Below, in pieces: positions 1 through 32,700 of a stretch of 34,122 bases of DNA. The translations under genes and the position numbers were made by a program. The notes beneath the pieces are model-generated. The model saw only the letters and a program-made list of their open reading frames with translations. It was not told the DNA's origin and ran no database searches. Source of the DNA: Kudoa neothunni (Eukaryota; Animalia; Cnidaria); NCBI GenBank assembly GCA_964304625.1, contig OZ199840.1, forward strand, positions 1 through 34,122. Direction: 5' to 3'. The stretch's first letter is position 1. The number at the start of each line of letters is the position of its first letter.

Positions 1-173
1 TATGCGCATGGATTAAATTTAAAATCATAAAATATTCTCGTTTTTCTGCATTGATTATTAGTTCAACATTTGTTGTTTAATGAATTAAAACTGAATCATT
101 TTTATTAATATAAAAATAGAAAAATGTTGACGTCAACGCTGAATTTTATTCTAGTCCTTTAAAATAAAAATAA

Positions 174-497
174 TCAAATGATGACAATACACTTGTATTT
201 TACGGTAGCGTTTAATTTCTTGATGAATAAAATTATTGCGCAATATCCACCTACACAATAACAGTTGTTGACTGTATTCACAAAGTTAGCCGTTACTAGA
301 CTGGAGTTGTTACCAAATTTAATGGAAAAGCGCATGCTTTCTTCCAACCCACACATTGGGAAACCCTTCTCCTTAAAACATCTTCAAAAATTGTTTAGTG
401 CTAAAAGATAAATTTTTTATATTAAAATATAGATTCAAACTACAGGACGTAAATTTTTCATTGTATTTTTGATGTGAGTCTACCTGTGATGATTAAC
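174..497 (-). pseudogene. Possible exon remnants of a disrupted host gene (continues at 3217-3247 on the far side of the hAT)
   Basis: GC-richer, exon-like blocks separated by an AT-rich GT..AG segment (~401-442). The joined frame reads ..HQKYNEKFTSSLNNF*RCFKEKGFPMCGLEESMRF.. with in-frame stops. No family recognised. Confidence 0.25.
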
Positions 498-505
498 CCA
501 TATAG

Positions 506-3208
506 CAGGACAGGGCAGGGCAGGCCAAACCATGGCTCTTTGAACGTTAGGGTGTGGCTCTCGAAAAAAAAATTCATTGATTCAAAATTTTTAAAATTCA
601 ATAAGCGCTTTAATTTAGAAAAATTAAAAGTTTGAACTATTTAATCGACTGAAGAAATGAACTTTTTAATTGTAACCTAGATAGTATTTTTGGCTTGGAA
701 ACGTAATTACGGACATTTATATAGTTTCAGTATTTGATTCAAGCTAGAATTATTATTAGTTTTGTTAGGAAATACAATTGTAACTAATGTCTTTCCATTA
801 TCATAGTGATGGATATCGTAAGAATAAACACGCGTTAAAGCTTGAAAAGAGAAGGTGGACAAGTGGAAATGAGAATGGTCTCACGCTGGCTCCTTGGTTA
901 GTCTATAAATGACCCAACTCGTCCCTCGGTGCAATTCAAATAACTCGGAACGTGCTGTCTTGTAGCTGTGCAAATTATTTGTTAGAATTGGAGCTTAAGT
1001 GATAATTCAAATTTAGTTATTGTATTAAAAAATTTATGGATTCTTTAAATAAAAAAAGAAAATATGATGACGACAAAAGAATATTCAACCCAGAACGGGG
1101 AAAGAATTTGCCTTTATCGTAATGGGGGGGGGCAAGCCATGTGTATTATTTGCAATCTGTTCGTAAGTGACAACAAAGCTTCTAACCTGAAACGACATTA
1201 TGAGAAAAATTATGGGAACTTTTCTCGTGATTATCGTTGTAAGTCTCAAATAAAAACCAATAAGGTATGTTCTTTAAAGTCATCATTAAATAAACGCCGG
1301 TCACTTTTGACGACATTATCCGCCGAATTTCTCTAGCAACTGAAGCTAGTTTTATTATTTCGTGGAATATCTCTCGCGCAATACGTTCATATTCTGATGG
1401 AGAATTCGTCAAGAAGAATATTGCTGAAGTTATTGCAGTTTTAGATCCCAACAACGAAAGACTTCAACGTTTCATAAAACAAACACCAGTTTCTCGTCAC
1501 ACAATGGAAAAGCGAATCTCTCAAATAAGTGCTGATGTTCGCGATAAACTAAAAAATGATTTGAAAAATTCGTTTGCTTTTAGCTTAGCTCTTGACGAAT
1601 CAACGGACAACGGACATTTAAGAAAATTCCCAATTGGTCATATTCATTCTCTATGTTTTATATGACCTAACTATTAAGGAGGATTTGTTGGATTTGGTGG
1701 CATTGAAAGAAACTACTCGTGACAATTACGTTTAAAATGCACTTTATACAACCTTAGCAAATGCTGGCGTTCAGTTATGTAATCTCCTTAGCGTTTCGAT
1801 AGATGGAGCTCCTGTGATGGTAGGTAAGAACGTAGGCTTAATTGCACTCATGAACAATGATCCAAGGTTTGGAAAACTTATCCCCATACATTACATTATT
1901 CATTGCAAACATCTGATTGCGAAATACTTCAAATATGAAGATGTGATAAAGTGTGTACTCGAAATTGTCAATTATATACGATCAAATCGGAAGACTCGTC
2001 GATAAGCAGAAATTTTGTTGATAAACCTAACGACGTGTCATTCTACTGTATTGTGAGATGACTGCCAACTAGCAATGTGTAGAATAGGTTTGTCTAGCTT
2101 TTAGAACTGATTAGTTTATTACTTAAAGAGAAGAACAAATCATACCCTCAACTTGAAAATAATCAATGGCTCTACGACATGATGTTTTTTACTGACAAAT
2201 GAATCATCTTCAAAATCTCAATTTAGTATTTCATGGGAAGAAAAAATTGGTTTCGGATTTTGTTCAAACAGTTTTCAGCTTCGAGAATAAATTACGAGTT
2301 TTCCATCGAGACATTATATCACAGAATATCAAGGAACTTCATTTATTTTCCAAATCTCAATAGACAACGAAATTTATTCCCTAATGATGTAATACAAAAT
2401 GAGAAATTGGAAGAATATAGCTGCAAATTATAACAACTTATGAACGACTTTAATGATCGTTTTGATGATTTACAGAAACTGAAACTATGCTTTATGTTCC
2501 TCATCAACCTATTTGTGATCGATGTAGTTAATGATGGTTGTAAAAATCTTGAACCACTGGTCATCGATTATTCAACTGTGGAAATGGAACTAATGGATTT
2601 TCAAGATGATCTGGCTTTAAAGATGATTCATAACTCCAAGTCGCCACTAGAATTTTGGAAAAACTTATCAGGAATGAAATATCCAAAATTAAAAGTAATG
2701 ATTATCAAACTTATTTCTATTTATGGAACAACTTATTGTTGTGAATCCCTTTATTCTACGACGAAGTTTGTGAAATCGAAGCATCACGGATCCCTCACCA
2801 ACAAACACCTGACGGAATTAATTCGCACGGCTTTAACAGCATATGAACCAGATTTCCGTCAGCACACTGATAATATGGAAAATATTTTATTATTTTTGCG
2901 GCCTTTTTCAAAAAGAAAACATTTTTTGGATCATTCACTGCTAATATACTTTTCTTGAAAAACTATTATGAATTATACCAATAAAAATTATATATAAGTT
3001 TTCCAATGATTAACTGAATAAGAAAATAATTTAAAAATCTTTATTTATAATTCTACAAAATTTTACATTAGGATGTGTCAAAGGTTTCAAGAAGTGTAAG
3101 TTTTAAAAAAGGAAGAGATACAAAAAACTTTTTTAACACCTTGCGGCTCTTTTAAATATAGGCGCTCTTAAAGTTGCCTCCCATTCTAGGCAAGGCTGGC
3201 CACCTCTG
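506..3208 (+). mobile_element. hAT DNA transposon, Buster/SPIN (GTF2IRD2-like) group, full length but decayed
   Basis: 8-bp TSD ccaTAtag (498-505) / ctaTAtag (3209-3216) has the central TA typical of Buster elements. Imperfect TIRs: left cagga-caggg-CAGGGCAGGCCAAAC, right (reverse complement) CAGAGGTGGCCAGCC. Internal transposase relic. Confidence 0.9.
1036..2958 (+). pseudogene. GTF2IRD2/Buster-like hAT transposase, frameshifted and with stops
   Basis: Start MDSLNKKRKYDDDKRIFNPE. Zn finger CIIC..NLKRHY. Catalytic region LALDESTD, SIDGAPVMVG, HYIIH (CxxH decayed), VR*L (RW), and C-terminal FWK..YPKL..YGTTYCCESLYS. Spread over several frames. Confidence 0.92.
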
Positions 3209-3368: not shown

Positions 3369-4029
3369 GGTAAAGTCAGTTATTATTATTAGATTTAATA
3401 AGACGTAGATTAACATAACATTAATCTTCAGTTATTCACTAAATTTTATAAGAATTAATAATAAAAATATAATTTTATTATTTGCTTGAAATCATATAAT
3501 TGAGAAATGGCGTTAAAAATAAATTTCTATGATATTCGACATCATCAATAATTCAAAAATACCAAAAAATAACAATTGCTAGTTGACTCCAAAAGAAAGT
3601 ATATAAAAAATTGGAAAAAAGTTTTAATAAGATGAATATAAATATCGTAATACGTTAGATGTTATTTGTTGTAAATAAATGAAACCCTAACGGAACACAG
3701 TTCCAAAAAACTCAAATATTGATCACGATGTACATAAATTAAACCCAAATAATATCCAAAATACTGTAATTAACGTACTTGAATGTTTTATTAATAAATT
3801 TTATTTGTGCACATTATTGATTCACTAATAGTTAATAATATGTTGGTTCGGCAGATAAAAAACGTACTAGCCACGCATGGACTGCTGTAATATGTATTTC
3901 ACTGTCTACTCATAAGTAAAAATGCATTCAAAGTTATTCGAAAAAGTCAAAACGAACAAATATTTTGTAGGCAATATGCAAAGTCAAAATTATGTTACTA
4001 GTATTGTTAAAAGTTCGGCATATTTCATC

Positions 4030-6245
4030 CTAAAGATCATTGAATAATCTTTGTGAAAACTTGGAACTTTTCTTGTAAACCAAAAACAATAGAAAACACT
4101 GCATAACCAACAAAAAAATGGATAGTATTCCAGTAGCTGCAATAAGGACGTGTTTCCTTCTAATAAACAAGACGGTTTTCAGTCTAATTCCTCGATATTG
4201 GTAGAGTCGTCCAACAATTTTAGACTCATCGATAGTCGTGGTAGGTTCAAGTATAATATCAGCACTTGTTGTGTACAGTGTTGATTTTATTGTAGTAATC
4301 TCTTGCGTTTGTGAGCTTTCCTCTTTTGATAATGAAACTGAATCAATGGACTGCACACTTTCTCTATAACATAATCAGTTTAAAAAATTCAATATTTTTA
4401 CTTTATCATTTTTTCTTCATCCAAGAATAGGGATCCATACAAAGGGTCAACAAACAGATACACATTACCTGTTTGATGATTAACTAGAGGCCTAAACACA
4501 GTTATGGATGAAGGTTGGATGTATGGTTTAATATACGTACTTTAGCGCAATATTTATAATCACATTCGATTCCGTCATAATAGGACTAAATAACAATGTA
4601 AGTATTATATTCAAAAGAATGCATCTATCGACAATATCTTCCATTGACTAAATAGTTTTATATTTTTTGAAAATATAGATTTTCTTACAGCCACTGATTT
4701 GATGTGATCAATCAAACAATAAATATTTAACTGATCAGTTAAAAAGTTTTTCATTTCTTCGTATGTATGTTCATTCAATATCAAAAAATCATTATAGATC
4801 TATATAATATGTATTTTAAACATAGTAATTTATTATCACATAAATTTTGTCAATATCCTTGGTAAATAAATTTTTGGTGAAAGACGCCAAATTACAGTAT
4901 GATTCTGTTGGACAAATCACTTTATTGTGAAAAATTGAATACAATAGACTAACGCATTCGATCATGTTATATTCTCCAACAAAAGTAATTTTAAATTTGA
5001 GACGGGGCTTCTCCGTACAGATTGATTGTATCATTGTGTTGTCAATATTTTCGCTGTGTCCATTTGGATAGCATGGATGAATCATCTTTTCCAGTGAAGG
5101 ATCGATGTTTGATTCCTTCTCCTTCTGTTTTTTAAAATATAAATATTCCCAGATAAATTATTGTTTACTTTGAATAATTTATTATAGGTCTCAAATAGTA
5201 TCTCGAAAACCGACAAGCAGTAAAAGGTATTCACAAACGCCGTGTACTTCGTGCCCCCTATGTAAAATTCCCTCACCATTATTTTATCGTATAGATTTGG
5301 AGATTTTGTTATGAATCCTATGGAAAAATCGGTATTGGATATGCTGATGAATGGCGTGGATTTTAATGCCTTAAAAATATTATTTATGTGGTGATAAATC
5401 GTACTCGTTACTCCGGCTTCAAAATCATAATTATGTTGCAGCAAGGAAATTAATCCACCACTTTGTTCATTAAGTTTGATTTGATTTTTTAATATTATTT
5501 TCAAATTCTCCAACTGAGATTCTTTTTCAGCGTGGTAATTCAGAATTTGTTCGTATTCCTCTTCAGAGAATCTAAAATATAATTTATAATTGATTTTCTA
5601 GATTTATGTACATATATTTGTATTCAACATGGAAAATCCTGTGCACAATTACTTCATTTTTCTCAACAGTATCCCATCCACACTGATCAGCGGCCGATTT
5701 CACATACCACACGATATTCCAATCACCTATTAGAGTTAACTCATCCAAAATCATTGCATGTAGCAATTTTCAATCACAATATAAATATGTATATATTTTT
5801 GTTTAGATACAAAATAAACAATCAAGAGAATGTCTACACTATCATGACGCGTTAATTATTTTAATGAAAATATATATTTAATAATAATTAGTTATATAAT
5901 GATTTTTATTATTTTATCGTTTAGTAAGAGGAAGTCGATGTTATATTTCATTTTCAGTAATATATTCAATATTAAAAAATAAGTTACTTAAACATATGGA
6001 ACTCTCTACATTGAGTTTCTCTACCGAATACAAATCATATTGTTGGATTGGAACTCTCTCATAGCAAATAAAGATATTTTCTGAAGTATCCATGATTATC
6101 AAAAGTCCATACTTTCAATTAAAATAAAAAGTTAATTTATGATCAACAATACAAAAGCTACTTGTTTGATTGCTTTGTTGTTTGATATCACAAACTTGTT
6201 TAATAATAAGTTCACCAAGAAAATATAGGAAAACAAATGCTTCAT
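4030..6245 (-). CDS. Divergent GDA1/CD39 (ecto-NTPDase/apyrase)-fold type-I membrane protein, probably catalytically dead, ~550 aa
   Basis: Hand-built model with phase-compatible GT-AG introns. Exons 6245-6162, 6111-5988, 5726-5612, 5571-5169, 5124-4840, 4799-4689, 4647-4541, 4491-4402, 4363-4030 total 1653 nt with no internal stop. Signal-peptide-like MKHLFSYIFLVNLLLNKFVIS. CD39-like blocks: FYIGGTKYTAFVNTFYCLS (cf. LYGKDYNVYTHSFLCYG), HPCYPNG, SICT, ICPTESYC, DRCILLNIILTLL. S/T-rich stalk and C-terminal TM VLIAATGILSIFLLVMQCFLLFLVY. An in-frame 42-nt GT..AG stretch in exon 4 may be an extra intron. Confidence 0.8.
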
Positions 6246-6685
6246 GACGTAAACCAATCGATTAGCGATATCTTAGTAAACAAACTTAATCGAAGGTGAA
6301 TTATTGGCACACGAATTAAAGATTAACCCAAATCCATACATTTTTGGGAAAGCAATAATCAAATATTCGTGTTTCTAATTCTCATTTGATTGGGGAAATT
6401 TACAGGTAAATCATATTAATAACGTTTTCGTTTAATAAAGAATAAACATTTTTATTATTGGAAATTATGTTTTATTTTACATCTAAAGATTGTTACTATC
6501 ATCTTTATTGTAATTAAAACAATGTTACACTGAAAACTTTGAAAATCATTGATTATATAATATGAAAGTATTATTTTATGGCCAATATCATCACATCTTT
6601 AGACTTCAATCGATTACATCGCTTTACATCTGGCAAAAAATATCTAATCCAACTATTTAATCACAACTAATTCCTAATTTTTGGT

Positions 6686-10130: not shown

Positions 10131-10950
10131 ATGTTTTTTCCTAATAAGGAGGGTTGGATTTGCTTCATGGGACGGTTTTCATGCTTTGTTGAGACCAATG
10201 GAGTTGAAACGGAAAGGCAGAATAGCCTGTTACTTTCTATCATGCATGTTCCAACTTATGGAGTGCTGAACACTCCAAACATCCCGATGAAACTAACAAT
10301 ACCTGAAATTACTAATTAGATGAGCGAACACTTCGATACTAAGACTCTTGTTATTTCGGAACGGTTCACTTTCTGGAAAACCGAACAAGATGACAATGAA
10401 TCTGTCGCTGAATATATTATACTAAGAAGAATGCGTGCAAAATGTGAGTTAGGCTCATTCTTGAAGGAGGCTCTCAGGGATAAATTTGTTGGAGGACTTA
10501 AGAGTGAATTAGCAAACGCACAGCAATTACTCCTTGCGGAAAATAATGTAACATTTGTAAGAGCTATTGAATTAGCTTCTGCCCAAGAAGCAGCAATGTT
10601 ACAGCAGCGAAAGAGGCTGAATGAAAATATTGGAAAAATTTACAATAGAAACACTGGTGGTAATCGAGAGAATAATGATGAAATTTCACCAAAATGTTAC
10701 AGATACAACGGACCCAACGATCCGAAGAAATGCAAATTTATGGACGCAAATTATTACAATCGTGGGAAGACAGGCCACATAAATGGAACCTGCAGGAAGC
10801 GAATTACAACTATGAATGTTAAAACTGTTATTATAAATGACAATAATGAAAAACATTTGAATGAAATTAACCATGTGGCGCCTTTATTTATGCGGGTTAT
10901 GATAGACCAAAAATTTATCAAATTGGAGATTGATACAGATCCCCTTTACC
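10131..10950 (+). pseudogene. gag: Gypsy gag and start of aspartic protease
   Basis: HFDTKTLVISERFTFWKTEQDDNESVAEY..LKEALRDKFVGGL, two decayed Zn knuckles (CYRYNGPNDPKKC, YYNRGKTGHINGTC) and protease LEIDT(D). Confidence 0.88.
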
Positions 10951-10956
10951 TTATTG

Positions 10957-11675
10957 GGCTGAAATTTGGTCTAAGCCCCCCTAATCCTCAATAAAATAAT
11001 GCTTATATTTATTATAAAAACACATTTTAGAAAAAAACAACAAAACGCTCATAAGAGTGGTTTTATTGTAGATTAATTCTTAGAGATTACATAAAACCTC
11101 TCCTCCATAAGTCATGTTGATTTTTTCTTCTCCATTGAAATTCACCGAGAAATTCATTAATGACATCCATACGAACAGTTCCATCCTCATTAACCAATGT
11201 TGTTCTATTTCTGGGAGATATTTGAAATTTTATGGCACCCCAAGTGCCCTCAATATATTGGTGTGATCTCCCGAAACACTATCTATATTCTATACTGTGG
11301 TAAACAGTGAGATGAGTGTAGAAATTATGACGTGTGGCGTAGCTTTTGAAACAGTCAGTGATGATAATTGAGCCTGGTTAATCATAGGTTTTTATTTTTT
11401 TTATTAAAGTTTCAGTAGTTCTATCAGGGACCTCCACTAGAAACACTCTTCTTTCGGGTGTCCTTTCGACACCTCCAGGAACCCGTGCTCCATTAACACC
11501 ATGACCTTGGTTTATGCTTTAGATTACCAAACTTGGACTCATCAATTTCTACGACTGTATTTTCTCCTCCAATTATAATGTCCTCGAATCCTAAACTATC
11601 GACCATCATTTGTCTAAGATAGTGAGAATAGTTAGTGATAGTTTGAGAAGAGTGGCCATTAGAGATCATGAAGTT
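10957..11675 (-). mobile_element. Merlin (ISXO2/IS1595-like) DNA transposon, 3' half, nested in the Gypsy protease
   Basis: Terminal GGCTGAAATTTGGTCTAAGCCCCCCTAA matches the end at 18125-18150. Minus-strand IGGENTVVEIDESKFG, GGVERTPERKVFLVEVPDR, PGSIIITDCFKSY, IEGTWGAIK. 5' end and TSD absent; right boundary approximate. Confidence 0.9.
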
Positions 11676-11679
11676 AGAA

Positions 11680-14413
11680 ACGAAAGAAATTGGAAGCTGT
11701 TGAAGAAATATCATAAATTATTTTTGAACGAACTTGGATGTTTCAATGGAACAAAAACTGCAATATCACTGAAACCTATTACGTCGCCTATTTTTTGTAA
11801 GCACCGAAGAGTATCTCTTATAAGAAAGAAATGGTTTCAACAAAACTCGATAGACTGGTAGAGGCTGGCATATTGAAGGCTATCAGATTCAGCAGATGGG
11901 CCACAACTGTAGTTGTTGTTGAAAAGATAGGCGGTGGAGTAAGAATTTGTGCTGATTTTTCTGTCACATTGAACCCTCATCTAAATGTGGATATATATCC
12001 ACTACCTACAGTGGAAGACATCATGTCTACTCTTGCCGGCGGAGAGTCGTTTAGTGTTATTGACTTAGCAAATGCTTATCTTCAAATGGATTTTGAGAAT
12101 ACTTCAAAGGAGTTTTGGACGATCACAACACAAAGGACTGTTTGAATATCAGAGGCTTCCTTTTGGGTTGGCGTCGGCCCCTGCGATTTGACAAAGAACA
12201 ATGGATATGCTATTGAATGGTATACCAGATGTTCAATGTTATTTGGATGACATTATTGTTACGGGGAAAACGAGGAATGAACACTTGAGAACGTTAGATA
12301 AGGTGCTGAATATACTTCAGCAGCATGGTCTTCGCCTGAACAAAGAGAAATGTGCTTTCCTTAACGAATCTATTGAATATTGCAGATATAATGTTTCCAG
12401 AAAAGGCCTAATGAAAAGTTAAATAGTGTGGAAGCAGTAATGAGGATGCAAAAACCTTCTAATAAAACAGACATAAGGATATTCTGTGGAATGCTAGATT
12501 ATTATAGGAAATTCATTCCAAATTTTTCTTCCATACTCCAATCCCTGTATAACTTGCTGAAGAAAGAAAATGAGTTTACATGGAATGAAATCCATGACCA
12601 TGCGTTTGAAGAAGCAAAAGATTTACTTTCGAATAAAAATATGCTAGTCTATTTTGATCCATCTCTAAAATTATTATTGACAACAGACGCTTCTGGCAGT
12701 GGTGTTGGTGCAGTATTATCCCATGTTATGGACGATAACCTTGTGAGACCTATCTCATTTATTTCTAGAAGCCTATCAAAAAGAGAGGAAAATTATTCCA
12801 CGATTAAAAAAGAAGGATTAGCGATCATTTGAGCAATTCAGAAGTTCCATCATTACCTGGAGGGATGACGATTCACCTTGTTAACTGAATATAAGCCATT
12901 TTTAATCCTAAAAATGGGATACCGAAGACAGCAGCGTCTAGAATCCAAAGGTGGGCAGTCATTATCTGGATACTTGTTTGAAATCAAATATCGAGCCGGA
13001 TCTGAAAATAATCCTGGTGATTGTTTTCCTCGCCTTTTTATGAGAAAGAAGGACGCTAATGAAGAACTTGAAGTGGCAAATGATATGATTGATAAATTAG
13101 TTGTTAAAAAAATTTTAAAACATGGACACTTTCACTTTACGCTTGAAGAACTGACGAGAGAAACAATGGCAGATGAAATCCTAAGTAGTGTTATTAGTCA
13201 TTTTAAGAATGGATGGAAAAGCAAAATACCAATCGGATTGGAACAATTCAAAAGGAGGAAAAATGAGATATCGTTTTTGAATGGATCATTGCTACTTGGC
13301 GGACGGATTATCATACCCAAATCACTCCAAAGTATAGTGTTGAAGGAATTGCATGCGGGGCATATGGGAATATCAAGAACCAAAGAACTAGCGAGAAGTT
13401 ATGTTTGGTGGCCTAACATAAACCGTGATATTAAAAGGGTAAACTTCAGCTGCTGCTCATGCCAGGAAGAAAAACGTAAAATGCCTATTAAAAGCAAAGT
13501 ACAGCAATAGGAGAATTGTTCACGTCCACTTGAAAGAGTATATTTCGATCTTACTGGTCCTATTAAAGGGTTGTATTTGCTTATAATGGTCGACGCTTAT
13601 TCAAAATGGCCTGAAGTGATACCTATGAGTTCGCCAAATGGAGATAGAACTGTTTCTGTTATGAGGACCTTATTTTCACGTCTTGGTAATCCTGAAACAA
13701 CGGTGTCTGATAATTGTCCCAAATTTGTCCCCAAAGAAATGAGGGATTTTACTGCTAGCAATAACATCAGACATAAATTTATTTTAGCTTACCATCCATC
13801 TTCCGACGGACTGGCAGAAAGGTTTGTACAGACCTTCAAAGGATGCCTTGATAAATCTGATAGTGACATACAAAAAAGTATCGATCGGTTCCTGCTTCAT
13901 CAAAGAAACACACTACACAGCACAACATCAATGGCGCAATCAATCTGTATGATGGGAAGGAGGCCAGGTAGTTTCTTCGACACGTTGAAGATCCAGCCAG
14001 GGAAACCAAGAATGAATAGAGAAAAGGGAACACGAGTACTAGAGCCCGGTGAAACCGTACTGATTCGAAATTTCTTGAAAGGCCCGAAATGAATTAAGGG
14101 TAAAGTTCTTAAAGCGGTTGCACCCCTTACATATTTGGTGTTATCCAACGGACGAGAATTAAAAAGGCATATTGACCATTTGATAATGATTCCATACACT
14201 GAACCAACTGATGAGATTGATGCAAACCCTATTGAAGAAGATATACATCAACAACAAATACCAGTGGCCAATACTGAGGAACCAATTATAGATTCTACGG
14301 CCGAGGAGGTGGAAAACCCTAATCTTACTGACGATGGTGTATCATCTGATAGCGAAGATGTAAATGAAGCAACCTTAAGAAGATCTACAAGACAAGTAAA
14401 GAAACCAGGTTGA
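11680..14413 (+). pseudogene. pol: Gypsy pol (RT, RNase H, integrase), fragmented
   Basis: RWATTVVVVEK..RICADF, IDLANAYLQ, CYLDDII, TTDASGSGVGAVL, LHAGHMG..WWP..CCSC, VDAYSKWPE, VSDN, GLAERFVQTFK, ending LRRSTR. Confidence 0.95.
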
Positions 14414-18461: not shown

Positions 18462-21400
18462 TCATGTTTTGACGTAAATATTTTCACATTTTTCATAAAT
18501 TTCATTCTTTTTGACGCTTCTGTATCGTATTACTGCGCCAGCGATTGCCATAGCCACTAAGGCTACTGCAGCACCTGCCACAATCATCTTGAAATAATCT
18601 TTTGCTAATACATTATTAGACTCTCCTAATGCTGCAGAATTTTGATATGAATCCGTATATTTATTGTCGTTATTACTATGTTCTTCAAAATTTTGAGATT
18701 CATCTACTTTTTCTGTGATAGCATCAGCTGTTTCAGCTGTTTTAGTTGATGACGTGTTGCTGTTTAAATCTTGAACATATTTTTCATCTTTTTTTATCGC
18801 TTCATTAAGTTTATTCCTAAATTCTTCTGCATCTTTTGGAATAGTGGCTTTGATTTGACCGTTATATACTGTAATTGTAATAGGATTTTTATTTTGATCG
18901 AGGAAACTCTCTATTTTTGGAATAAGTGCACTATATTGTATGTGCAATTCGCCAAACTCGTTATCATCAGTTTCTGAATCAATTTTCGTTAATAAAGATT
19001 GTATTTGTCTTAATAAGTCGGCAGATCTAGATGTTTTTTCGGAATATTCCTTGTCAAGGCCATTTTTTTGGTTAGTATAATGCGTTTTGGCTTCGGAAAT
19101 GGTTTCTGAAACTTTTTTCAAATTCTCATCAAATTCATCTTTCAAACTTTGATTTTCAACTTTTATTTCAGTAAATTTACTTCTCAACTCCTCAGGAATA
19201 TCACTTGTATCATCGTTGGATTTGGCTAACATTGCGTTATGTGCTGTTTTGTATTGTTGATATTTATTTAAAGTTGCAGTCTTTTCTTTTTCTAATAATT
19301 CAGTCTCTGATTGACCAGTAGATGAAATTCCGGCTTGTTTTTCGTTTATCAAATCATTATTGCTATCGTATTGAGACTTGGTAACTTTCAAGAAGTTATC
19401 AAGCTCTCCTTTCTTTTCAGTGAGTTTTTTGTTAGCTTCATTAATTGTAGAGGCTGTTTCTTCCAGTGAATGCAGTTTCTTAAGGAATGATTGAAGGTTA
19501 ATTCTTTCGTTTGAAACGTTCCTGGTGTAATCTTCAATAAATTTTACTTCATCAGCAATCTCACTATTCACGTTGTTTTTCATAGTAGACAATTGTGCCA
19601 ATTCCTTTTCCATTTTATCGGTTGTAGCTTTGAATAAGTCAAACTTTTCTTTCAAAGTTTGATTAACTTTTCCAATTCTTTTCACAACATCATTATTTGA
19701 CAACGCAGGTTTATCATTATTAAATGTGTTATATTTTTGAAGAAGGCTCATTATGTCACTCTTGGCGGTTTCCAAAATTGCGTTGTTCTTCTCATAGTCG
19801 GTAGAAATTGAAGAAAATTCATTTTCATGATTCTTTATTTTGCTGTCTATTTCAGTAACAGATTTATGACACTCGATATTCAGATCATTCAATCTCGAAA
19901 AATTATTTTCCACCAAGAAATCTCCTTTCAAGTGTCGCACAATTATTGAACTATGGCTAATTGATTTAATCTTTGCTACCTTGTCGTTAGCTTCGTTGAT
20001 GGTTTTTTTATAATAATCTTGCCCGTTTTTAAGACCATTTGTTTGGGTATTGAGTGTTTCTTTGTAGTTTTTAAATAAATCGGTGAGGTCATCTTTGATT
20101 CTTGTGAAAGAAGTTTGATCCATGATTTCGACTGTATTCAGTCCATAGCCAAGAGATTCCAACATATTCGCATGCACATTTTTCATATTGTCGACTTCTA
20201 TTTCGTAACCGGATTTCAAGGATTTCAATTTGTTAATTTCGTTAGCTATATCAGAGATCATGAGTTTAATACTTTCATAGGATTCTTCATACTTTTTGAT
20301 ATCATCTGATAGTTTTTCAGCGTCACTATCGAGATTTAAATTTAAACGTGATGTTTCTTCAGATATTAGTAAACCAAATTGAACAGGTGTAAAATTTTTC
20401 TTAATTTTTATTCTCCCTTTTGCTTCTTCTATCATTTTATAATCTTTGATTAATTTTTGAGCACGTTCATTGATACTATTCACAAGTACTTTATTATTTT
20501 TGATTTTGGATTGAACATCAACAATTTTGGATATTAAATTAGTACTCTTTATCGTAGTTTGGCTCAATTCACTTCCGGTAACGTCAACCAAGTTAGAAAA
20601 CAAGTCTGATAATTCATTAGCTTTAGTTTTGAGAAATGAGGATGTATTTTCGGAGAGTGACAATTTGAAACTATTATTATTTTCCCTCACTTTTTGTATG
20701 GTTTTAGATGCTGTGGTCAAGCTATCTTTTATTGTCGTTAATTGGTTAATATCAACTTGAGATTCTAATGAATCTAAGTTTTTTAACAATTTCTCGTGTC
20801 GAATATTAATATCATTCAATTTGGTGGCGGGATTTGTAAAGGGTAGCATTTTATCTAATTTTCCCTGATTAAGTTTTCTTCGATACTGTGGAATTTCTAC
20901 TTTTGTTATGGTTTCGATTTCAGATATTAAATTTTGGTAGATATTTAAAGTAGCTGTATTCTCAGTTTTCAATTGGTTGAAATCTATTTGCCACTGTTCA
21001 ACATTTTCCTTAACTTGAGTATACAATTTTTTAACTCGTTCAAACTCAAGATTTGATTTGTTGCCAAATAATTGTCTTGTATTCAAAAAGTTTTGAATTT
21101 CATTGTTTAATCGTTTACCAGTAAACATTCGCTTTCGTAATCCGGATTTTGACGGGAGTTGGTCAATTTGTGATATATAATCATCAATTTGCTTTTTTAC
21201 AGGTTTTATGCGGTTAATGGCATCAGTAATGGCTTCAGGTAATTCGGCTATATTTTGTATTGTTATTGAAATTTTAGCTTGAAGTTCTTTAGTTTTGGAA
21301 ATCTGATTTTCATACGATTCAAGCGCTGCTTTTAGTTTATCAATTGTTTGTGTCATTTTTTTCGACAAATCAGACGAGATATAAGTCGTTGATGAAAAAT

Positions 21401-22361
21401 CACTTTGTGTTTTTTTTAGCAAACTTTGAATTTCATCTGCTTTGTTGATCGACACGCTTCCAATGTTCAAATTACGTAGAATTGTATTGAAATTTTGAGA
21501 ATTACTCAAATAACTTTCAAACAATTCTTTATTGTACTTTGTGATAAAAGATTGCATATCAGATTTTATTTTTCCAAAGTATGGAACCATTGCCTCTGTC
21601 ATGTTAGTATAGAAAGGAATCATTTTTTGTTTTCTCTCTTCAATTGACGCAATAAGCTCAACAGTGGGATCATTCTCGCAGTGATATGTTTTTTCATAAT
21701 AACTATTTAGATTATCTGTGTAAACTTCTATTTTTTGTATGGAATTTTGCATTTTTGAAATTGAAGTTTTTAGATCCAGACTTAATTTATAAGACATACA
21801 ATCATTATAATCCTCACGAGTTACTTCTTGGTTCAATTTGAGATCTGTATTTAAAAATAATTTAACTTTCTCTGAATATTCTGCAAATTTATCTATCAAG
21901 GGAAATACATTCTTGACGCCTTTGAGACAATTGACGGCTTTTTCGCAACGATTTCGAGTATCAATGTCCGTTTGCACTATTGACCCGCCTTTAGTATATT
22001 GTTTAAATAGTTCTACTTCATAGATTTTAAACCAACCAATCCCCCAAAATTTGAATATATGAAGCATATCATGCAACATCTTCGTATTCATTATATCTTT
22101 GTGAGATTCATAATTTATCCTGCTGTTTTGAAGGAAATTCAACCGTTTACTGCAACGTTGAGATAATGATGTTAATAATTCACGTTGCATAAGATAGTGT
22201 TTCCTTGTTTCGTTATAGTGATGACACGCAATTGTTTGATCACCATAGTCTATTAGAGGAGTAGTGGAATAAGATGACAATGTCATCAACAACACGGAGT
22301 CTATGCAACTAATTAGTCAATCTAAATAATAATAGTTTTTACATATTAGTTGATTGAACAT
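18462..22361 (-). CDS. Large alpha-helical/coiled-coil type-I membrane protein, 1285 aa, function unknown
   Basis: A 19-nt first exon (22361-22343), a 42-nt GT-AG intron (22342-22301) and a 3839-nt exon give signal-like MFNQLIYSVLLMTLSSYS. Uninterrupted 3.8-kb ORF in AT-rich DNA. K/E/N/S/L-rich heptad-like body, TM MIVAGAAVALVAMAIAGAVI, tail RYRSVKKNEIYEKCENIYVKT. Confidence 0.92.
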
Positions 22362-24810: not shown

Positions 24811-27800
24811 TTACCGTAATATCTCCCTATAAACTATATTTTTGGTCCGACCATTCATTTGGAGAAAAACTGTATAAATTGTGTTTGGAACCTACCCTGG
24901 AGTTGGCGACATACAACTGCTCATGAGAAAAACGCGGTTCCTCCAAATTTAAATTGGCAACTTTGAAGGTTTGCTCTTGGGCCTTATTTACGAACATTGC
25001 AAAGCATGGTTTGATGGGAAATAGCAGTCTTCTAAAATTAAAGGTGGCGTCTGAAGGAGCAATCGGAATATTTACATTCTCTTAGGCACAACCAGTTACG
25101 ATAGTGGCCAAAATAAGATAAGACATTAGCGACTTTACCATTATACGAGTGCCGTAACACAACCTTGGTGAATCCAAACTTCTTAGCAATATAATTGGAA
25201 TGGCTAACTTTAGAAGAATCTTGTGCGAAGGAACCCCCGAAAGCTCTAGAGTCTAGACTGTTGAGGAATTCAACAGGGAAATTGACACACTGATATTTGT
25301 TCACAACAGTGACATATGGTTTATACACTGAAGAGTCGCCTGGAATAAGACGAATCAATCTATCATTGATTTTGTTTACGGAATGGTTTGTGGGGGTTTA
25401 GATAGTTCGTTCTGACAGCCAATTTGCGTATGAAAAGTTTGTTTGTATTTCTAGTAAAATACGGTCTATCAATTCATCCATGAACAAAACCAGGTTTGAC
25501 ACGGAGCATAGAGGATACATCCATCGGACTCAATGGTAAGTTGATCATCACCAATCCGTAGTATTTCTGAAATAGATTGACTGGCTCCTTATTCGTTGAT
25601 GATTTGCACTCAAATATTGGCGGTGAGATGGATGGTTTAACGTTTGCCCATGTGGAAGAGAACTTTATGGAACATTTTACTTGGTCATATCTTGTACCTC
25701 TCGTTATTAAGGGTAGAGTTTAACTAAAATCGCCAGACAAAATCATTGTGATTCCGCCAAATGGAATGTTTTTGTATGTTAAATCCCTTATTCTTCTATT
25801 TAAAGCTACGAAAAACACTCTGTTTGCCAACGTGCATTCATCCCATATGATGATCGTGCATCTGGTCAACAATTGGGACAAACCTGCCTCCTTGCTGATT
25901 GCACATACTTCGGCTCCATCACCCTTAATCGTGATTAGCAACATAAATATACTGTGGGCCGTGCCATTCCCTGGTAATAAAGTGGCTGCAATACCCGGAG
26001 AAGCAACAACGAGAAAATTTTAGAATCTATTCTTAATTCGGCAAATAAATGGTTTGACACTAATGTCTGACCTATACTACCTGGTGCACCAAAAAAAAAC
26101 GTTACAAACACCTATATTGTAATAAATGCTCCCCAACACTGTTTTGAATGCAAATCGTCGGTCAGTTGTCAGTTTCGTCTTGTTTATTTCTACAAACTCG
26201 GATAATTGTTCAGTGTTGTAGGTTAATTCTCTCTGGATTTCGTTTGGAAGAGAGGCGCAAAACGTTTTGTCCAAATGAGGAAATCCGTATGAATTTAACA
26301 TTACTCCATCCATTTGAATTAAGTGTTGTCTGTGTCAATTAGGGTCATGTTAAAAATGTCAGAATTAAAAATCACGTTTGGCATTAAACTGGTTTGTTAC
26401 AGTTGATACCGCTAACCTTCCGACATAGGTTTCCTAAAAAGTAACCACAGTTTATGAAGCTGGCGCATTTCGCAATTTCTGATCAACTGTGCGAATAATT
26501 TTCGTAATTGACGTGGACTGTTTGCATGAGCAGCTTCCCTTAATATACATTCTCAGTGGTTGTCTCCCTTCAACAAATCACTTTCATTGCACGCTTCAAG
26601 GAATATTGGATATACCTGGCCGTGAACCTTTTTATGATTTTCAAAAGTTTTAGGCCCATTTACACAATGGAGCAACATCCTCAAATAAAAACATTCTTGA
26701 TGTGAAAGATGTACACTGTAAACTCTTCCTATTGTAGAGTCGAATCGTATGCCTGGATGGCCTTCAACTGGACATCCTCTTTTCCCAATGCCAACTATTA
26801 TCCGACCATATGTAATAAGATGAGACAGAGCGAATTCGTCATTCTGGCATAGGCTGAAAAAGCGGTTAATCTCGTGTCCCTTTGGATTTTGTAACCGATT
26901 CAACAAAGTTTCGTCGGTGAAATAAATACGCTGACCGTTCTCCGAAATCCCTCACTACTGCTTATGTAGCGACCAGGCTGGTAATTGGAAACTTCATCCA
27001 AACGATCTTCTTGATTAGCAGCAAACATGGTCGCATCAAAACCTTTGTTTACATACTTGCATATATATTTGGGGGTCTTGACTGAATTGTAATACTCTAC
27101 ATTAATATGAGTATTGAAAATCTTCGTCAACAAAGGACAATAGGGAACAATCCACTTATTTTCTATGATGACTTCCCTATCGTTGTTCAGATGGATTGAC
27201 GCACCAAAACCCCATCTTCAGGTTTTCTTCTGTAAACATGATATCTTTCAGTGTCCGTCTGTGATAGTTTTTGGTGCATTCTCTCTGATCATACGTGCAC
27301 GGGCTTTTTGGATTTAACGCACCACAGAGACCATGGTTGTTCTTACAATCTAAAACAATACTGGACCTACACCTGGGTCTGGTAATTCGTTCGATATGAA
27401 TTTGTCGATATCATTGGAACGCAGTTTCTGGTTCATCCAGACCAATATATGAGCGTGTGGAAGCCCTCTTTGCTGTCACTCAATAGTATACATATAACAC
27501 TGAATTTCACCATAAAACTTCAATCTATGAATTAAAATCATCAAAACATTTAACTTCAAGTTGAATACTCTATCTACTATGTCCAGTCTCTCTTTAGATG
27601 CTTGGCCAGGAAATAACTCTTCATTCAGTTAGCTCCAAAATGGATTAGATTACATGTGAATGTTATAAATAGATCTGGCCCTCTAAAACATCGAACGTAT
27701 GTCATGGCAAGTGTCATGTACATAATCTCTTCTTTTAACAACGTTAAGTATTATAACCTCCTCCCAGCTCCAAAGTACAACACTTAACTTTTTCCTAGCA

Positions 27801-29672
27801 ACCGACTAATGTGATTCATAATCATCGTAAATGATTCTTCCCAATATTCAACAAATAGAAATACTCATTCCTTAACATCCATTTCATAACCTTATCCTAC
27901 AAGACGCCGGTAAATGAATATCTCCAAACATCACGTATTCCACGACGAGTTCACGCCACAACGCGGGTTGCTTCAATACAAAAATGTAGCATTTAAACAT
28001 TGTAGTAATTTATCATTAGTCTAATCCCCTTTGTTGTTTTACTTTCAAACTGTTTTCTTTTACTGGCGCTAGCATTCATAACTTAGTTACAACAACAGGC
28101 TGCATTTTCACGTTCATATAGCATGGTGAACCTACAAAAGTCGATGGCAAAGTATACAACCGTCCCGCCCCATTTATTTCACCGTTGCTACTAATACTAT
28201 CAATTAAATTGATGTAAGAATCAACACGAAGTCTATATTGTTTCGCTCTGATAAAACAAAGTCTCTCTGATTCCATCTTCACAAACATATCTACAGCATA
28301 TTGTTGGAATAATGTCCAAAAGTGATGAAGCATGTTAAAACTATTTTCCCCTTCCATAAAATGTAGAGAATAGAAATTCTGACATGAAACACTTTTTTTT
28401 GCGTCAATCTGTAGAATATGAAAATGGTAACCATCTTGATCATAGACATTAGTTAATGGATATTGCAAAACATAATGCGATCTGTATGTTTCGCTTATTC
28501 TTTATATTCTGTTATCCTTATTCCTCAAAACAATATCCTTCGTCAATGCTGCTCATCCGTCATTGCGATGGCCACCTCATTTCAAGTTGGAGAGTTGTAT
28601 TTTCTCTCATTTTCTCCTTGTAGAAGCTTGTCAGAGTTTATAATTATATCAAAATCAGAAGACGGGTGCATTTCTAAGTCATGCCTAAAACTGTGGATGT
28701 AGCTAGTGTGTCTGTGTAACATACATATCTTGAAGCGCTAAAATAATATCATGCCTATGCTAGAGATACATATTGGATCGATTTTGAGCTTGAAAATACA
28801 TGTTTTGTACGAAATATAATCGCAAGAATTTCGTTCCTCATTTTCAGAAGTCAATAGCGATTCAATTCGATGACACATTCGACCGTGAACCTTGAAAGTA
28901 AAGTAGGCATGAATCTGTCCCTACAAATTACGTTCGCTCCAAAAGATGTCATCTGGAAAGTGCAGTTGTATTTTCGGATATTTTGTAGCAAGTGTCTTGA
29001 AATTCCGGAGTCTATAGAAAATGAGATGAATCAGGTAGTGTGTCCAAAATAACATTACCGCCGGAACAACACAACCGTGGATTCATTTATTCACTTCTTA
29101 GCACGACATTTTTGGCAAATTTTCCAAATTGTAATATTCGTTTCATTTCCATGTTGTAGCAGAGGTCGTAATGCAAAGCGACCATATTCCAAGTATCATC
29201 AGGCATACTTCGCGTTTGTTGACCTAATAGAACAGGAGTGTAATAAGGTTCAGGTACAAATTTACTGTCTAATCCTGTGTTGTGTTCATTTATAGGTGAC
29301 ACTGCAGGACTCTGTTGAGTCGTCTCACATACACGTCGATTTCTATTTCTTACTCTATTTGCTTCTCGTCTTCGTTCTCTTTGCTCGTCGGCAATTACGT
29401 TGTGAGTGTTGGTGTGACTCCTGAGAAGAAATAGAAGCAAGTGGATTTCGATTTGAAATATGCATTCACTGTGATTCTAAATCACACTCAGGCCATATTG
29501 TTGTTTCCACAACTCTCCTCTCTTGTATTCGCCTAGTTCGTCGTAGCGATGAATGATTCGATGAATTGTGCATACATATTGTCCGTCCATGTGAACAGTC
29601 TAATCGAAAGCAGGGTTGAGTGTGCGATGTCTTGGTGTTATTAATTTGATGTAGCGCTGTAGAAAAACACAC
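24811..29672 (-). pseudogene. Helitron RepHel (HUH Rep + PIF1 helicase) pseudogene
   Basis: N-terminal Arg-rich repeats (..RR..ETT), CQKCRA Zn finger, IRKYNCTFQMTSFGA, LPSTFVGSPCYM, PDLFITF, E*QQRGLPHAHIL (HUH), KYICKYVNKG, GIAATLL, IIWDEC, PFGGITMILSGDF, FAMFVNKAQ, FSHEQLYVANSRV. Confidence 0.95.
27712..28094. mobile_element. Candidate solo LTR (383 bp) inserted in the Helitron Rep domain
   Basis: Non-coding TGT...ACA segment flanked by degenerate 5-bp repeats gcaag (27707-27711) / acagg (28095-28099). Removing it restores ..YMNVKMQPAMTYVRCF.. in frame. Confidence 0.7.
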
Positions 29673-29681
29673 TGTTTATGA

Positions 29682-29765
29682 TGATAACGGATAAAATGCC
29701 GCTTAGATGGATTATCCATTGTTTATTATATTGCAATGTTAAATAACATATGCAAATCCGTCACA
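29682..29765 (-). repeat. Putative 3' LTR of the BEL element (84 bp)
   Basis: Starts TGTGACGGA right after the PPT, ends TCCGTTATCA (imperfect inverted repeat), contains AATAAA; Helitron-like coding sequence resumes beyond it. Confidence 0.55.
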
Positions 29766-32700
29766 CTCCCCCAAATTAAGTTCAGAATCCATCAATTTCT
29801 AAGGGGTAGAGTTGAGCCAAAGATCTCTTAGATGTCTTTCGGTTACCAAACTTAATCATCGCCGACCTTATTTGATTATCATGACCCTTTAGCAACTGTA
29901 TGACTCTAGCAATTTTCTAGTTAAGCTTTGAGTCCTGGTCATGCACCAGAACGATATCGCCAACTTTAGGTGTCAGTTCACTAGGCGATTCAGTAATCAA
30001 CCGGTTGTTGTATCTTTCTTTCAAACTCAATAGGTATTCTCTTCTCCAATGATTATTGAATACTGAAAGTAATTTTTGACCCTTTTTCCAATGATTGATA
30101 ATTTGTTCCTTCCTTAGATCCATTTGAAATGTTTCCAAATCATCCTCAGGCTTTAAGGTATAAGGATCACGTCGTGGATTCAGTATCAGGAAATCATTAG
30201 GTGTGATGGGGCGAATAACGGAATCAGCATCAACATAGGTTAATGGTCGATTATTCACCACATTTTCCATTTCGAATAAAAATGTCGACAGATGAGATAA
30301 GCTAAGTATCTTCTTTTTGGTGGTATATTGAAAACAGTTTTTGACAATTTTGATTAATCTCTCATATACGCCTCCCTTCCAAGGAGCAAACGCTGGTGTG
30401 AATTTCCATACTACATCATTATTAGTGAGAAAATCTTTTATTATGGATTCAGCCAGTCCGAATTGTGTTGCGTTATCCGATAAAATTTCTAGCGGTCTCC
30501 CTCTTCGAGCGATAAACCTACGATGACACATCAAGAACTCTTCAGCGGATAAATTGTGAATGATTTCGAGGTGTATTGCCCTTACAGCTAAACATGTGTA
30601 AAGTAAAGGCAGATCCAGACCTTTTCATTATCTGATCCAATCATTACCCCAATTGGGCCAAAATAGTCCAGGCCAACATGAGTGAATGCAGGAGATACGT
30701 TAACTCTAGAGACAGGAAACGGTGGAACATTGTAAGGTTTACTCTTTAGTATTTTGCATTGATGACATTTTCTAATGAATTTTTTAACTTGAGATCGCCC
30801 TTTAGGTATCCAGTATTGCGATTGAACCACTGAAAGCGTATAAGATACACCACCATGAATCGCTCTAAGATGAGCATCCATGATAATGAGTTTCGTGTAT
30901 TTTGTTGGTCTTGGTAACAATTTAGGATTAATTTCATCATATGCAAGTTGGGCAAAATCAAGTCGACCAGCACATCTGACTAGATCATTTTTGTCGAAAA
31001 AAAGTCGTGGTAAGTTGTTGATTTTCACAGGTTCTCCATTTTTAACTGATTCGTATATATCATGAAGATGGCTTTTTTGAATCCACAAGTCCCACATCAT
31101 TCTAGCTCTTTCTAATTCTCGAGCCGTAAGACATCCATTTATTTTGATGTTTTCTCTAGTGTTATAACAAAAACGATTACACCGCGCGGTAACCCGTAGT
31201 AGCTTAAGTAGACTAGTAAAATTTTCAATTTCAATAGAGAATGGACTTTGTATTAAGTGATTATTTGAATCTTGAACAACCAATGTTTTTATTTGCGTAG
31301 ATTCATGCTTTGCTAATTCGACCAGCGCTTCATTAGGAATATTAAGGTTATCTACAGCATGCATAGACTTCCCATAACGATTCATCCGATTGTAGCCAAG
31401 TCGGGCCATTCCACCATAAAGAGCTTTCAGACAGTTCAGATACGAGCATTCCTCTTGTAGGTATATCCGCTGGGTTTTCAGCAGTAGGTACATATTTGAT
31501 TGTTATATCCAAATTGCATTTGAGTTCATTTATTCTATTTTTGACGAATATCGATAAGTTCTTTTTTGAATAATACCAATACATAACGCATTTGGAGTCC
31601 ACAAAGAGCATACATTTTGATATATCAATTAACAATTGGCTCTTAACAAAATGCAAGGAACTGCCAGCGATAATAGCTCCCATTCAATTCGAGATTCGAG
31701 TCTTGGTATGGATAGCTTTTTCATTGGAGCTATTCTAGCCTTGGCAAAAACTAACTTGGAATACCATGAACCAGACTTTTTGTAGCAAATGTACACACAG
31801 CAGGCATAAGCATTCATGGACGCATCAGAAAAGGAGATTCGTTGAGGTTCCTCAGAACCCTGAATATCAATGAAGCGTTGAATTTCAAGTTTTTCGATGC
31901 CAGTAATATCATTCATTATTTTATCTATTTCACTTTTGGCTTCGTCACCAATATAATCGTCCCAATTTTTTGATTCCATCCATAAATTCTTCAGAAGTAT
32001 TTTGCCCTTCAACATCGTTGGACAAAAAAATCCGAGTGGATCGAATACTTTGGATCATTGTTTTTGTCACATCTCGTTTGGACATCGCAGAATTGGTGCC
32101 GAAACCTCCAATTCTCAGGCTGTCAGATTTTGTATTCCAGATTAAGCCTAAGACATTTATCTGTGTTGATTGAAGTTTCTCGTTGGTTGGAAATAATTTG
32201 TTAAATTCATTGCAATTCGAGCTCTATTCCAACAGATTCATTGAGCATTTTTTGAAAATACTTATCATTTCTTCTCGAGCAGTCATCACTTCCTCAATAG
32301 TATCTAATCCAATTATGAAATTGTCCATGTAAACGTTCGATAAAATTTTTCGGCATAGTTTTGAATTTGAACTTTCCAAGTGATGTTTTATAGTCGAACA
32401 AAGAATAAATGGAGATGCCTTTATTCCAAATGGAACTCTTTTAAATCGATATATCAAAACATTGTTTTTAGAAATGCCATTGTTCAAATTTTTGATACAT
32501 AAGAATCTCGTCAGGTCTCTATCACTTTCTTGAACACCGATTTGCAGAAACGCTTTCTCAATATCGCATAAAACTATAAATCTTTTGAATCGCATACGTA
32601 GTAGAATCCCGGTAAGATCATTCAACAGCATAGGTCCATCCAGTAAACAATCATTAAAACTTTTCGAAAGCTTATTTGATTTATACTATGCATTAAATAC

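Follow-up and report, generated by a model that had tools for sequence, protein, structure and literature searches.

A putative family of membrane-anchored pseudoenzymes derived from cell-surface NTPDases in the parasite Kudoa neothunni

The first 34,122 nucleotides of contig OZ199840.1 of the Kudoa neothunni assembly GCA_964304625.1 (hereafter the window, meaning this whole stretch) carry a candidate gene of nine exons on the minus strand between positions 6245 and 4030. Exons 4, 5 and 7 of this gene are related to the NTPDases, enzymes that degrade ATP and ADP; the encoded protein ends in a Ser/Thr-rich stalk and a transmembrane helix, and none of the five apyrase conserved regions (ACRs) that define an NTPDase is present in it. 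We consider it likely that the product is a catalytically dead, CD39-like, membrane-anchored surface protein with a non-catalytic role, one member of a family of at least 36 loci in this genome.

Gene model and protein architecture

The initial annotation had described the locus as an open nine-exon frame of 550 amino acids, and this model was reproduced. It consists of stop-free pieces in changing frames that can be joined into nine exons with a total of 1653 nt (550 amino acids plus stop), and coordinate arithmetic gave a consistent phase at every junction. The frame opens with its first ATG (6245-6243) and closes with a TAG (4032-4030), both on the minus strand. All eight introns follow the GT-AG rule, with lengths from 5' to 3' of 50, 261, 40, 44, 40, 41, 49 and 38 nt; seven of them span 38-50 nt, near the median intron length of 49 bp reported for the Kudoa neothunni genome (PMC12239612). 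Since exons 3, 4, 5, 7, 8 and 9 recur colinearly at paralogous loci, the gene model is more than a product of chance, and the gene structure is confirmed as real. The exons and the elements located within them are as follows.

6245-6162, minus strand: exon 1, 28 codons, with the start codon and a signal-peptide-like N-terminus; donor caA/GTAGCT, followed by the 50-nt intron
6111-5988, minus strand: exon 2, with two Cys and the ACR1-equivalent strand YGLLIIMDTSENIFICY at 6061-6111
5726-5612, minus strand: exon 3, with one Cys (DQC) and the ACR2-equivalent FHVEYK at 5617-5634
5571-5169, minus strand: exon 4, 134 codons, with the Cys FYC and a second hairpin and a helix after the ACR4-equivalent hairpin
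5427-5471, minus strand: ACR3-equivalent helix NEQSGGLISLLQHNY of exon 4
5310-5354, minus strand: ACR4-equivalent hairpin PFISISNTDFSIGFI of exon 4 (exon 4 residues 73-87)
5124-4840, minus strand: exon 5, 95 codons, the Cys-rich core with five conserved Cys (HPC, SIC, IEC, ICP, SYC)
4799-4689, minus strand: exon 6, 37 codons, with an IYNDF strand and the Cys IYC
4647-4541, minus strand: exon 7, with the helix DRCILLNIILTLL bearing the last conserved Cys
4491-4402, minus strand: exon 8, with the ACR5-equivalent LFVDPLYGS (DPLYG at 4434-4448)
4363-4030, minus strand: exon 9, with the Ser/Thr-rich stalk (4219-4362), the transmembrane helix (4075-4149), a short basic tail and the TAG

For exon 7 a second frame (SYYDGIECDYKYCAK) was considered and discarded, as the paralogs back the DRCILLNIIL frame.

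The hydrophobic core at the N-terminus (FSYIFLVNLLL) spans 11-13 residues, with values of 2.17 (KD11) and 1.46 (KD19) by hydropathy calculation only, and it looks like a signal peptide, being too short or too weak for a transmembrane helix. The helix at the C-terminus, on the other hand, is strong (KD19 2.51, likewise from hydropathy) and is followed by a basic tail of 14 residues. It is preceded at the start of exon 9 by a stalk of 48 residues, in which Ser and Thr make up 40% compared to 14% in the whole protein. The topology thus looks like that of a signal peptide and a single C-terminal transmembrane segment on a Ser/Thr-rich stalk, and differs from the N- plus C-terminal pair of transmembrane segments found in the ENTPD1/2/3/8 subgroup.

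The ectodomain contains 11 cysteines, comprising the ten listed in the initial annotation and an additional one in exon 2 (FIC), which is invariant in the exon 2 alignment A5; a twelfth lies within the transmembrane helix. All ten listed cysteines are present in the order that characterizes ENTPD1/2/3/8, and they would presumably form the same five disulfides. Five of them align to rat NTPDase1 and one to an alignment of NTPDases, which bears out the proposed correspondence for six residues; the other four were placed by colinearity. None of the 37 Asn of the window copy lies in an N-x-S/T sequon, an outcome with a chance expectation of approximately 0.4% at 14% Ser plus Thr. Most paralogs keep CN[FL]S behind the final cysteine of exon 5, and this sequon is absent from the window copy.

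Relationship to the NTPDases

All searches were performed exon by exon, and the support for NTPDase ancestry comes from single exons and via the paralogs. We used family alignments of exon 5 (A3; 18 rows, 16 paralog loci), exon 4 (A4; 30 rows) and exon 2 (A5; 5 rows), as well as an NTPDase alignment (A6) of the sequences P0004-P0007 and exons of L013, the canonical NTPDase of this genome (C2:7278745-7279569 plus flanking exons). A6 is small and without a cell-surface member; a search for bacterial NTPDase loci that would have enlarged it yielded none. L013 is the only match to the GDA1_CD39 family (PF01150) in the genome, at 119 bits, and the search controls work, because a single one of its exons matched PDB NTPDases at 4e-13.

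The most direct sequence match was obtained with exon 5. In A3 hardly any row departs from the first two cysteines, and each row that extends to the remaining three has them in register. When the A3 profile was compared to 177,635 PDB sequences, the top match was rat NTPDase1 (3zx0/3zx3, residues 253-320) with an E-value of 0.047 and an alignment that pairs all five cysteines; rat NTPDase2 followed lower in the same search (E 1.7). Exon 5 of two paralogs, scanned singly, matched PF01150 at model positions 238-301 with E-values of 1.3e-4 and 1e-3, both still significant after correction for 18 scans. The better of these two scored 21.2 bits (model positions 239-297), below the gathering score of 24.9 bits, which the window gene did not reach in exon-wise scans either. 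With hhalign, exon 5 aligned to residues 315-376 of P0007 in A6 (P 0.013) and exon 7 to RECFKSTWMQTLLHKG of the same protein (residues 464-479, P 0.0083), colinear with the exon 5 match. The last cysteine of exon 7 is invariant in the 12 rows of its family alignment (A7), and the exon 7 profile found no NTPDase among PDB sequences.

Structural comparison provided the evidence for exon 4. An AlphaFold2 model was built from the family alignment A4 as the only input, with no NTPDase sequence and no templates. Its first half was poor, while residues 71-134 formed a hairpin-hairpin-helix with a predicted local distance difference test score (pLDDT) of 77-95. In a Foldseek search of 350,542 PDB chains with this model, ranks 1-47 were all NTPDases, including rat NTPDase1 and 2, Legionella NTPDase1, Trifolium apyrase and human NTPDase4; the E-values ranged from 3.6e-3 to 0.2, none reaching 1e-3, with TM-scores of about 0.26-0.29. 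In the ESM Atlas shape search GDA1_CD39 was the sole annotated family among the 30 nearest models. A word-index protein search with exon 4 gave no match, and the Atlas feature search with exons 4 and 5 gave no usable match.

Because these four kinds of evidence on three exons point colinearly to one family, we accept with high confidence that the family is homologous to the NTPDases. For exons 4, 5 and 7, the analyses back the descent from a cell-surface-type NTPDase that the initial annotation put forward.

Loss of the apyrase motifs

The patterns D.G[ST].., [AS]T[AG]G.R, G..EG, [DE].GG.S and [WF][TAS].G. (ACR1-5, respectively) were scanned across the window exons and 53 family rows (A3, A4 and A5), and no canonical ACR motif was found in either. 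The control NTPDases P0006 and P0007 displayed all five regions and P0004 displayed three. The five strings proposed earlier as equivalents of the motifs (YGLLIIMDTS, FHVEYK, EQSGG..HNY, SISNTDF and DPLYG) are each found in the gene; the claim that all five motifs had been erased held, and no catalytic motif was recovered by the pattern scan as a better alignment might have done. The positions equivalent to the five regions were assigned as follows.

ACR1, exon 2, by order and by eye: strand KYG[IV]V[IL] kept, with HKS, YKK or FKK after it in place of DAGSS
ACR2, exon 3, by order and position and by eye: FHVEYK, with no ATAGxR
ACR3, exon 4, by the conserved ..NY that ends the helix and by a distance of 28 residues to the hairpin
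ACR4, exon 4 hairpin PFISISNTDFSIGFI, residues 73-87, by the AlphaFold model: loop varies in nearly every paralog
ACR5, exon 8, by order and by eye: D-P-[LM]-[FY]-G-S, with Trp absent in all rows

The exon 2 paralogs read KYGIVIHKS.., FGIVIYKK.. and KHGVVIFKK.., so that DxGS is gone, while residues G3, C17, Y18 and R20 are invariant in A5. The position of the catalytic Glu of ACR3 is occupied by Gly, Ser or Ala across the family. In exon 4, VIA aligns the model from residue 67 with rat CD39 from residue 205. In the exon 8 alignment (A8), D15 and S20 are invariant and F13 is nearly so. SSGLIELL, the top but insignificant hhalign match for ACR4, was rejected on the basis of its spacing and of the hairpin positions in the AlphaFold2 model.

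Judged by the motif scans and the Pfam threshold, the protein is best called a putative NTPDase-derived pseudoenzyme rather than an NTPDase. Nucleotide hydrolysis and canonical nucleotide binding would most likely have been lost, because the replaced elements include both phosphate-binding loops (ACR1 and ACR4) together with the ATAGxR strand of ACR2, the ACR3 catalytic Glu and the ACR5 Trp.

The gene family in the Kudoa neothunni genome

The assembly of 40.26 Mb consists of three large contigs (17.15, 12.04 and 11.05 Mb) and an 18.2-kb piece, with the window at the start of contig C3. This agrees with the published description of 40.2 Mb in total span, an N50 of 12.0 Mb, three inferred chromosomes and a circular mitochondrial genome, with a genomic GC content of 30.4%. 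The 5,316 gene predictions in that description were based on protein hints, very few RNA reads having mapped (PMC12239612).

Exon 4 gave 31 six-frame matches in this genome as a single sequence and 32 as a profile. The exon 5 profile gave 39 matches at approximately 36 loci, 37 of them stop-free. Exon 3 was found at 14 paralog loci with jackhmmer, and exons homologous to exon 9, with stalk and transmembrane segment, occur in five paralogs. Counterparts of exon 6, too weak for sequence searches, were recognized by eye in several paralogs as [IF]YN[DN].[FY]......C. Protein identity among the copies ranges from 23 to 58%, with one recent pair at 82%. When the in-frame introns were read through in search of longer open reading frames (ORFs), no paralog was continuous across exons 4 and 5.

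The loci are enriched towards the chromosome ends: about 15 of the 36 or so are at most 0.75 Mb from the end of a contig, compared to 11% expected from length, and two are less than 20 kb from an end (the window gene and C2:16 kb). The loci C2:11538476 and C2:11577861, about 39 kb apart, could not be told apart by score in any search, a sign of very recent segmental duplication.

Beyond this genome, a full HMMER search of 1.84 billion protein representatives with the exon 4 profile returned a single true relative, P0001, and two spurious repeat proteins. P0001 is a 116-amino-acid relative of exon 4 from an ENA metagenome. Its identity to the nearest paralogs is no more than 51-60%, so that the family must be present in a further organism.

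Many paralogs have an additional short intron or stop-containing insert in the part of exon 4 that links the NY.F helix to the ACR4-equivalent hairpin (for example L002 1668-1696, L050 3239-3290 and L051 3260-3274). The same hypervariable stretch is uninterrupted in the window copy, L045 and P0001. The hairpin is followed by a strongly conserved, family-specific segment, G-[FIL]-[FL]-T-x-x-P-x-L-Y-D-x-W-[MIF]-V-[KR]-x-F, which corresponds to a variable loop in canonical enzymes and is a candidate for a new functional surface.

Weighing of the alternatives

Several observations weigh against a dead, membrane-anchored relative of CD39, some with respect to its ancestry and others with respect to the integrity of the window copy. 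None of the nine window exons had a Pfam match at E-values up to 10; the Pfam comparison suggested in the initial annotation, carried out by exon, thus succeeded for the two paralog exons below threshold and failed for the window gene itself. The profiles of exons 2, 4 and 8 gave no signal by hhalign with either the canonical NTPDase exon or A6, and those of exons 2 and 4 found no NTPDase among PDB sequences. The AlphaFold2 model of exon 5 was poor (pLDDT 60.6) and its Foldseek output meaningless, leaving exon 4 as the part of the proposed structure comparison that yielded NTPDases. The assignments of domain I (exons 2 and 3) and of ACR5 (exon 8) are provisional ones, made by colinearity and by-eye similarity only. 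In addition, synonymous divergence (dS) was saturated for most pairs of copies; the window copy requires a 49-nt intron between exons 7 and 8 where L051, and probably L046, need none; and no reads were observed on positions 3900-6400 in three raw metatranscriptome runs and one contig set labelled with the species, in which the presence of the organism was not shown. Very few transcriptomic reads mapped to the Kudoa neothunni genome in its original description as well (PMC12239612).

The observations on the window copy bear on the alternative that it is silent or decaying, a transposon-embedded copy at a contig end whose frame is open only by virtue of convenient GT-AG pairs, which we regard as unlikely. 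The gene is located 4-6 kb from the contig end amid remnants of hAT, Ty3-like, Helitron and BEL/Pao-like elements, no reads were observed on it, and the CN[FL]S sequon common to most paralogs is missing. At least one paralog (C1:8.96 Mb) is a stop-riddled pseudogene. The junction of exons 7 and 8 deserves particular consideration. In L051 (2307-2546, minus strand; C1 at approximately 8.767 Mb) a single continuous ORF of 80 amino acids, itself without a Pfam match, extends across both exons, and the read-through sequence of L051 and L046 resembles translated parts of the 49-nt intron of the window (4491-4541). It is therefore possible that the window gene is a frameshifted copy rescued only on paper. 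On the other hand, the frame also changes between exons 7 and 8 in L050, L054, L056 and L057, implying an intron there too, and that of the window has clean GT-AG ends and the median length for the genome. The comparison suggests that this intron may have been gained by intronisation, or lost, within the family. The window copy moreover has nine open exons and only GT-AG introns, all but one of them 38-50 nt long, and it keeps each of the family-invariant residues that were checked. A paralog search and an estimate of the ratio of nonsynonymous to synonymous divergence (dN/dS), both suggested in the initial annotation, revealed the family of about 36 loci and exon-wise values of 0.2-0.45 for its less saturated pairs (dS <1.6); one young pair gave approximately 1.1, a value based on very few changes.

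It is less probable still that the protein remains an enzyme or a nucleotide binder that acts on another substrate or through non-canonical residues, such as a loop Asp or the conserved Glu located two residues upstream of the old catalytic position. The ACR3-equivalent helix of most paralogs does start with Glu or Asp in the context x-E-x-[ST], and the scaffold is constrained, but the Gly-rich loops of ACR1 and ACR4 have given way to bulky, variable residues that differ among paralogs, and the scan for ACR motifs was negative throughout. Convergence or chance resemblance of an unrelated, Cys-rich, lineage-specific fold is highly improbable, since four independent lines agree colinearly, namely the PDB sequence search, the Pfam matches, the hhalign alignments of two exons and, for a third exon, the two structure libraries, and NTPDases hold the first 47 Foldseek ranks despite being a tiny fraction of the chains searched.

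Genomic surroundings

The gene sits in a transposon-rich contig end, in which the transposon-bearing stretches are 1-3000, 10300-14400 and 25000-34122. The following elements were identified in the window.

2440-2958: hAT dimerisation domain
10320-14092: Ty3-like gag-reverse transcriptase-integrase
28076-28468: Helitron N-terminal domain
29917-34108, minus strand: BEL/Pao-like element

No telomere-type tandem repeat was detected in the first 10 kb of the contig, and TTAGGG and TTAGG arrays were not found. A nematode source was rejected since no SL1 was found, and BEL/Pao elements are not known from outside the animals. Positions 18462-22295 of the minus strand contain an intronless ORF of 1277 codons. 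Its product, probably a coiled coil, has a high content of Asn, Lys and Glu and terminates in a hydrophobic helix with a short tail; it had no Pfam match.

The 18.2-kb piece of the assembly (C4) was examined over its first 10 kb (L067). Long hydrophobic ORFs were apparent in this region only if TGA was read as Trp, and its GC content, at 43%, exceeds the value of about 30% for the nuclear window. ARAGORN identified no tRNA gene and Rfam gave no match over the same 10 kb. C4 is probably a divergent mitochondrial genome.

Proposed role and significance

The favored interpretation, a dead CD39-like surface protein, would describe a type I membrane protein whose ectodomain derives from a cell-surface (CD39-type) NTPDase. 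The scaffold-defining cysteines as well as the core strands and helices appear to have been retained, and the two-domain ASKHA (actin-like ATPase) fold with its disulfides may have been kept whole. What remains would be a disulfide-stabilised, non-catalytic module, raised above the parasite membrane by a glycosylated Ser/Thr-rich stalk; this module might serve in binding, adhesion or shielding at the host interface with a ligand from either host or parasite. A further step, that Kudoa uses the dead CD39-like ectodomains of this family as a major variable coat of its surface or as a repertoire for host binding, is one we propose tentatively and consider doubtful at present.

Myxozoan genomes are rich in orphan, fast-evolving genes with no assigned fold. 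For the family described here, the connection to a known enzyme scaffold provides 36 or more orphan loci with a structural identity and leads to the testable hypothesis that they function in binding, not hydrolysis, at the host interface. A lineage in which one active enzyme persists while dead copies multiply would illustrate pseudoenzyme evolution clearly. If the further step to a surface coat or host-binding repertoire is correct, the family would represent a new class of parasite surface proteins built from the NTPDase fold and, to our knowledge, the first pseudoenzyme family of NTPDase origin. Kudoa are parasites of fish muscle, and because Kudoa species spoil this muscle, abundant surface proteins could conceivably double as detection antigens. 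In the searchable literature we found no paper that links myxozoans with apyrase or NTPDase and no description of an NTPDase pseudoenzyme family. NTPDases have been studied as parasite virulence factors owing to their activity (review PMC8630654).

Comparison with known systems

The closest correspondence is to the cell-surface NTPDases ENTPD1 (CD39), ENTPD2, 3 and 8. The five core cysteines of domain II match rat NTPDase1 residue for residue, the hairpin-hairpin-helix of exon 4 is recognized as NTPDase by both Foldseek and the Atlas, the CF..[YI]I..LL helix before ACR5 aligns to NTPDases, and a length of about 500 amino acids with a C-terminal membrane anchor is shared. In contrast to these enzymes, the family is devoid of ACR1-5 and comprises at least 36 loci, with an extra conserved cysteine in exon 2, and the window protein is predicted to start with a cleavable signal peptide instead of the first transmembrane segment and carries a Ser/Thr-rich stalk ahead of its anchor.

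The canonical NTPDase L013 belongs to the same superfamily and is likewise a multi-exon gene with short introns, while differing in its intact ACR1-5 and its high PF01150 score. Comparison of L013 with the family exons revealed no similarity by tblastn and only noise-level scores by hhalign, so that a recent duplication of L013 does not account for the family.

Legume lectin-nucleotide phosphohydrolases (PDB 5u7x, 'Nod factor binding lectin-nucleotide phosphohydrolase') exemplify the use of the NTPDase scaffold for ligand binding. These proteins combine a lectin function with retained apyrase activity and, unlike the Kudoa family, they keep the ACRs, have no stalk membrane anchor and do not form a dead, expanded family. 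A different enzyme fold, in a different parasite lineage, has followed a comparable course in the inactive trans-sialidases of Trypanosoma cruzi, in which the fold is kept, the catalytic residues are lost and many diverged copies are presumed to bind at the host interface, a role that by analogy the Kudoa family may share.

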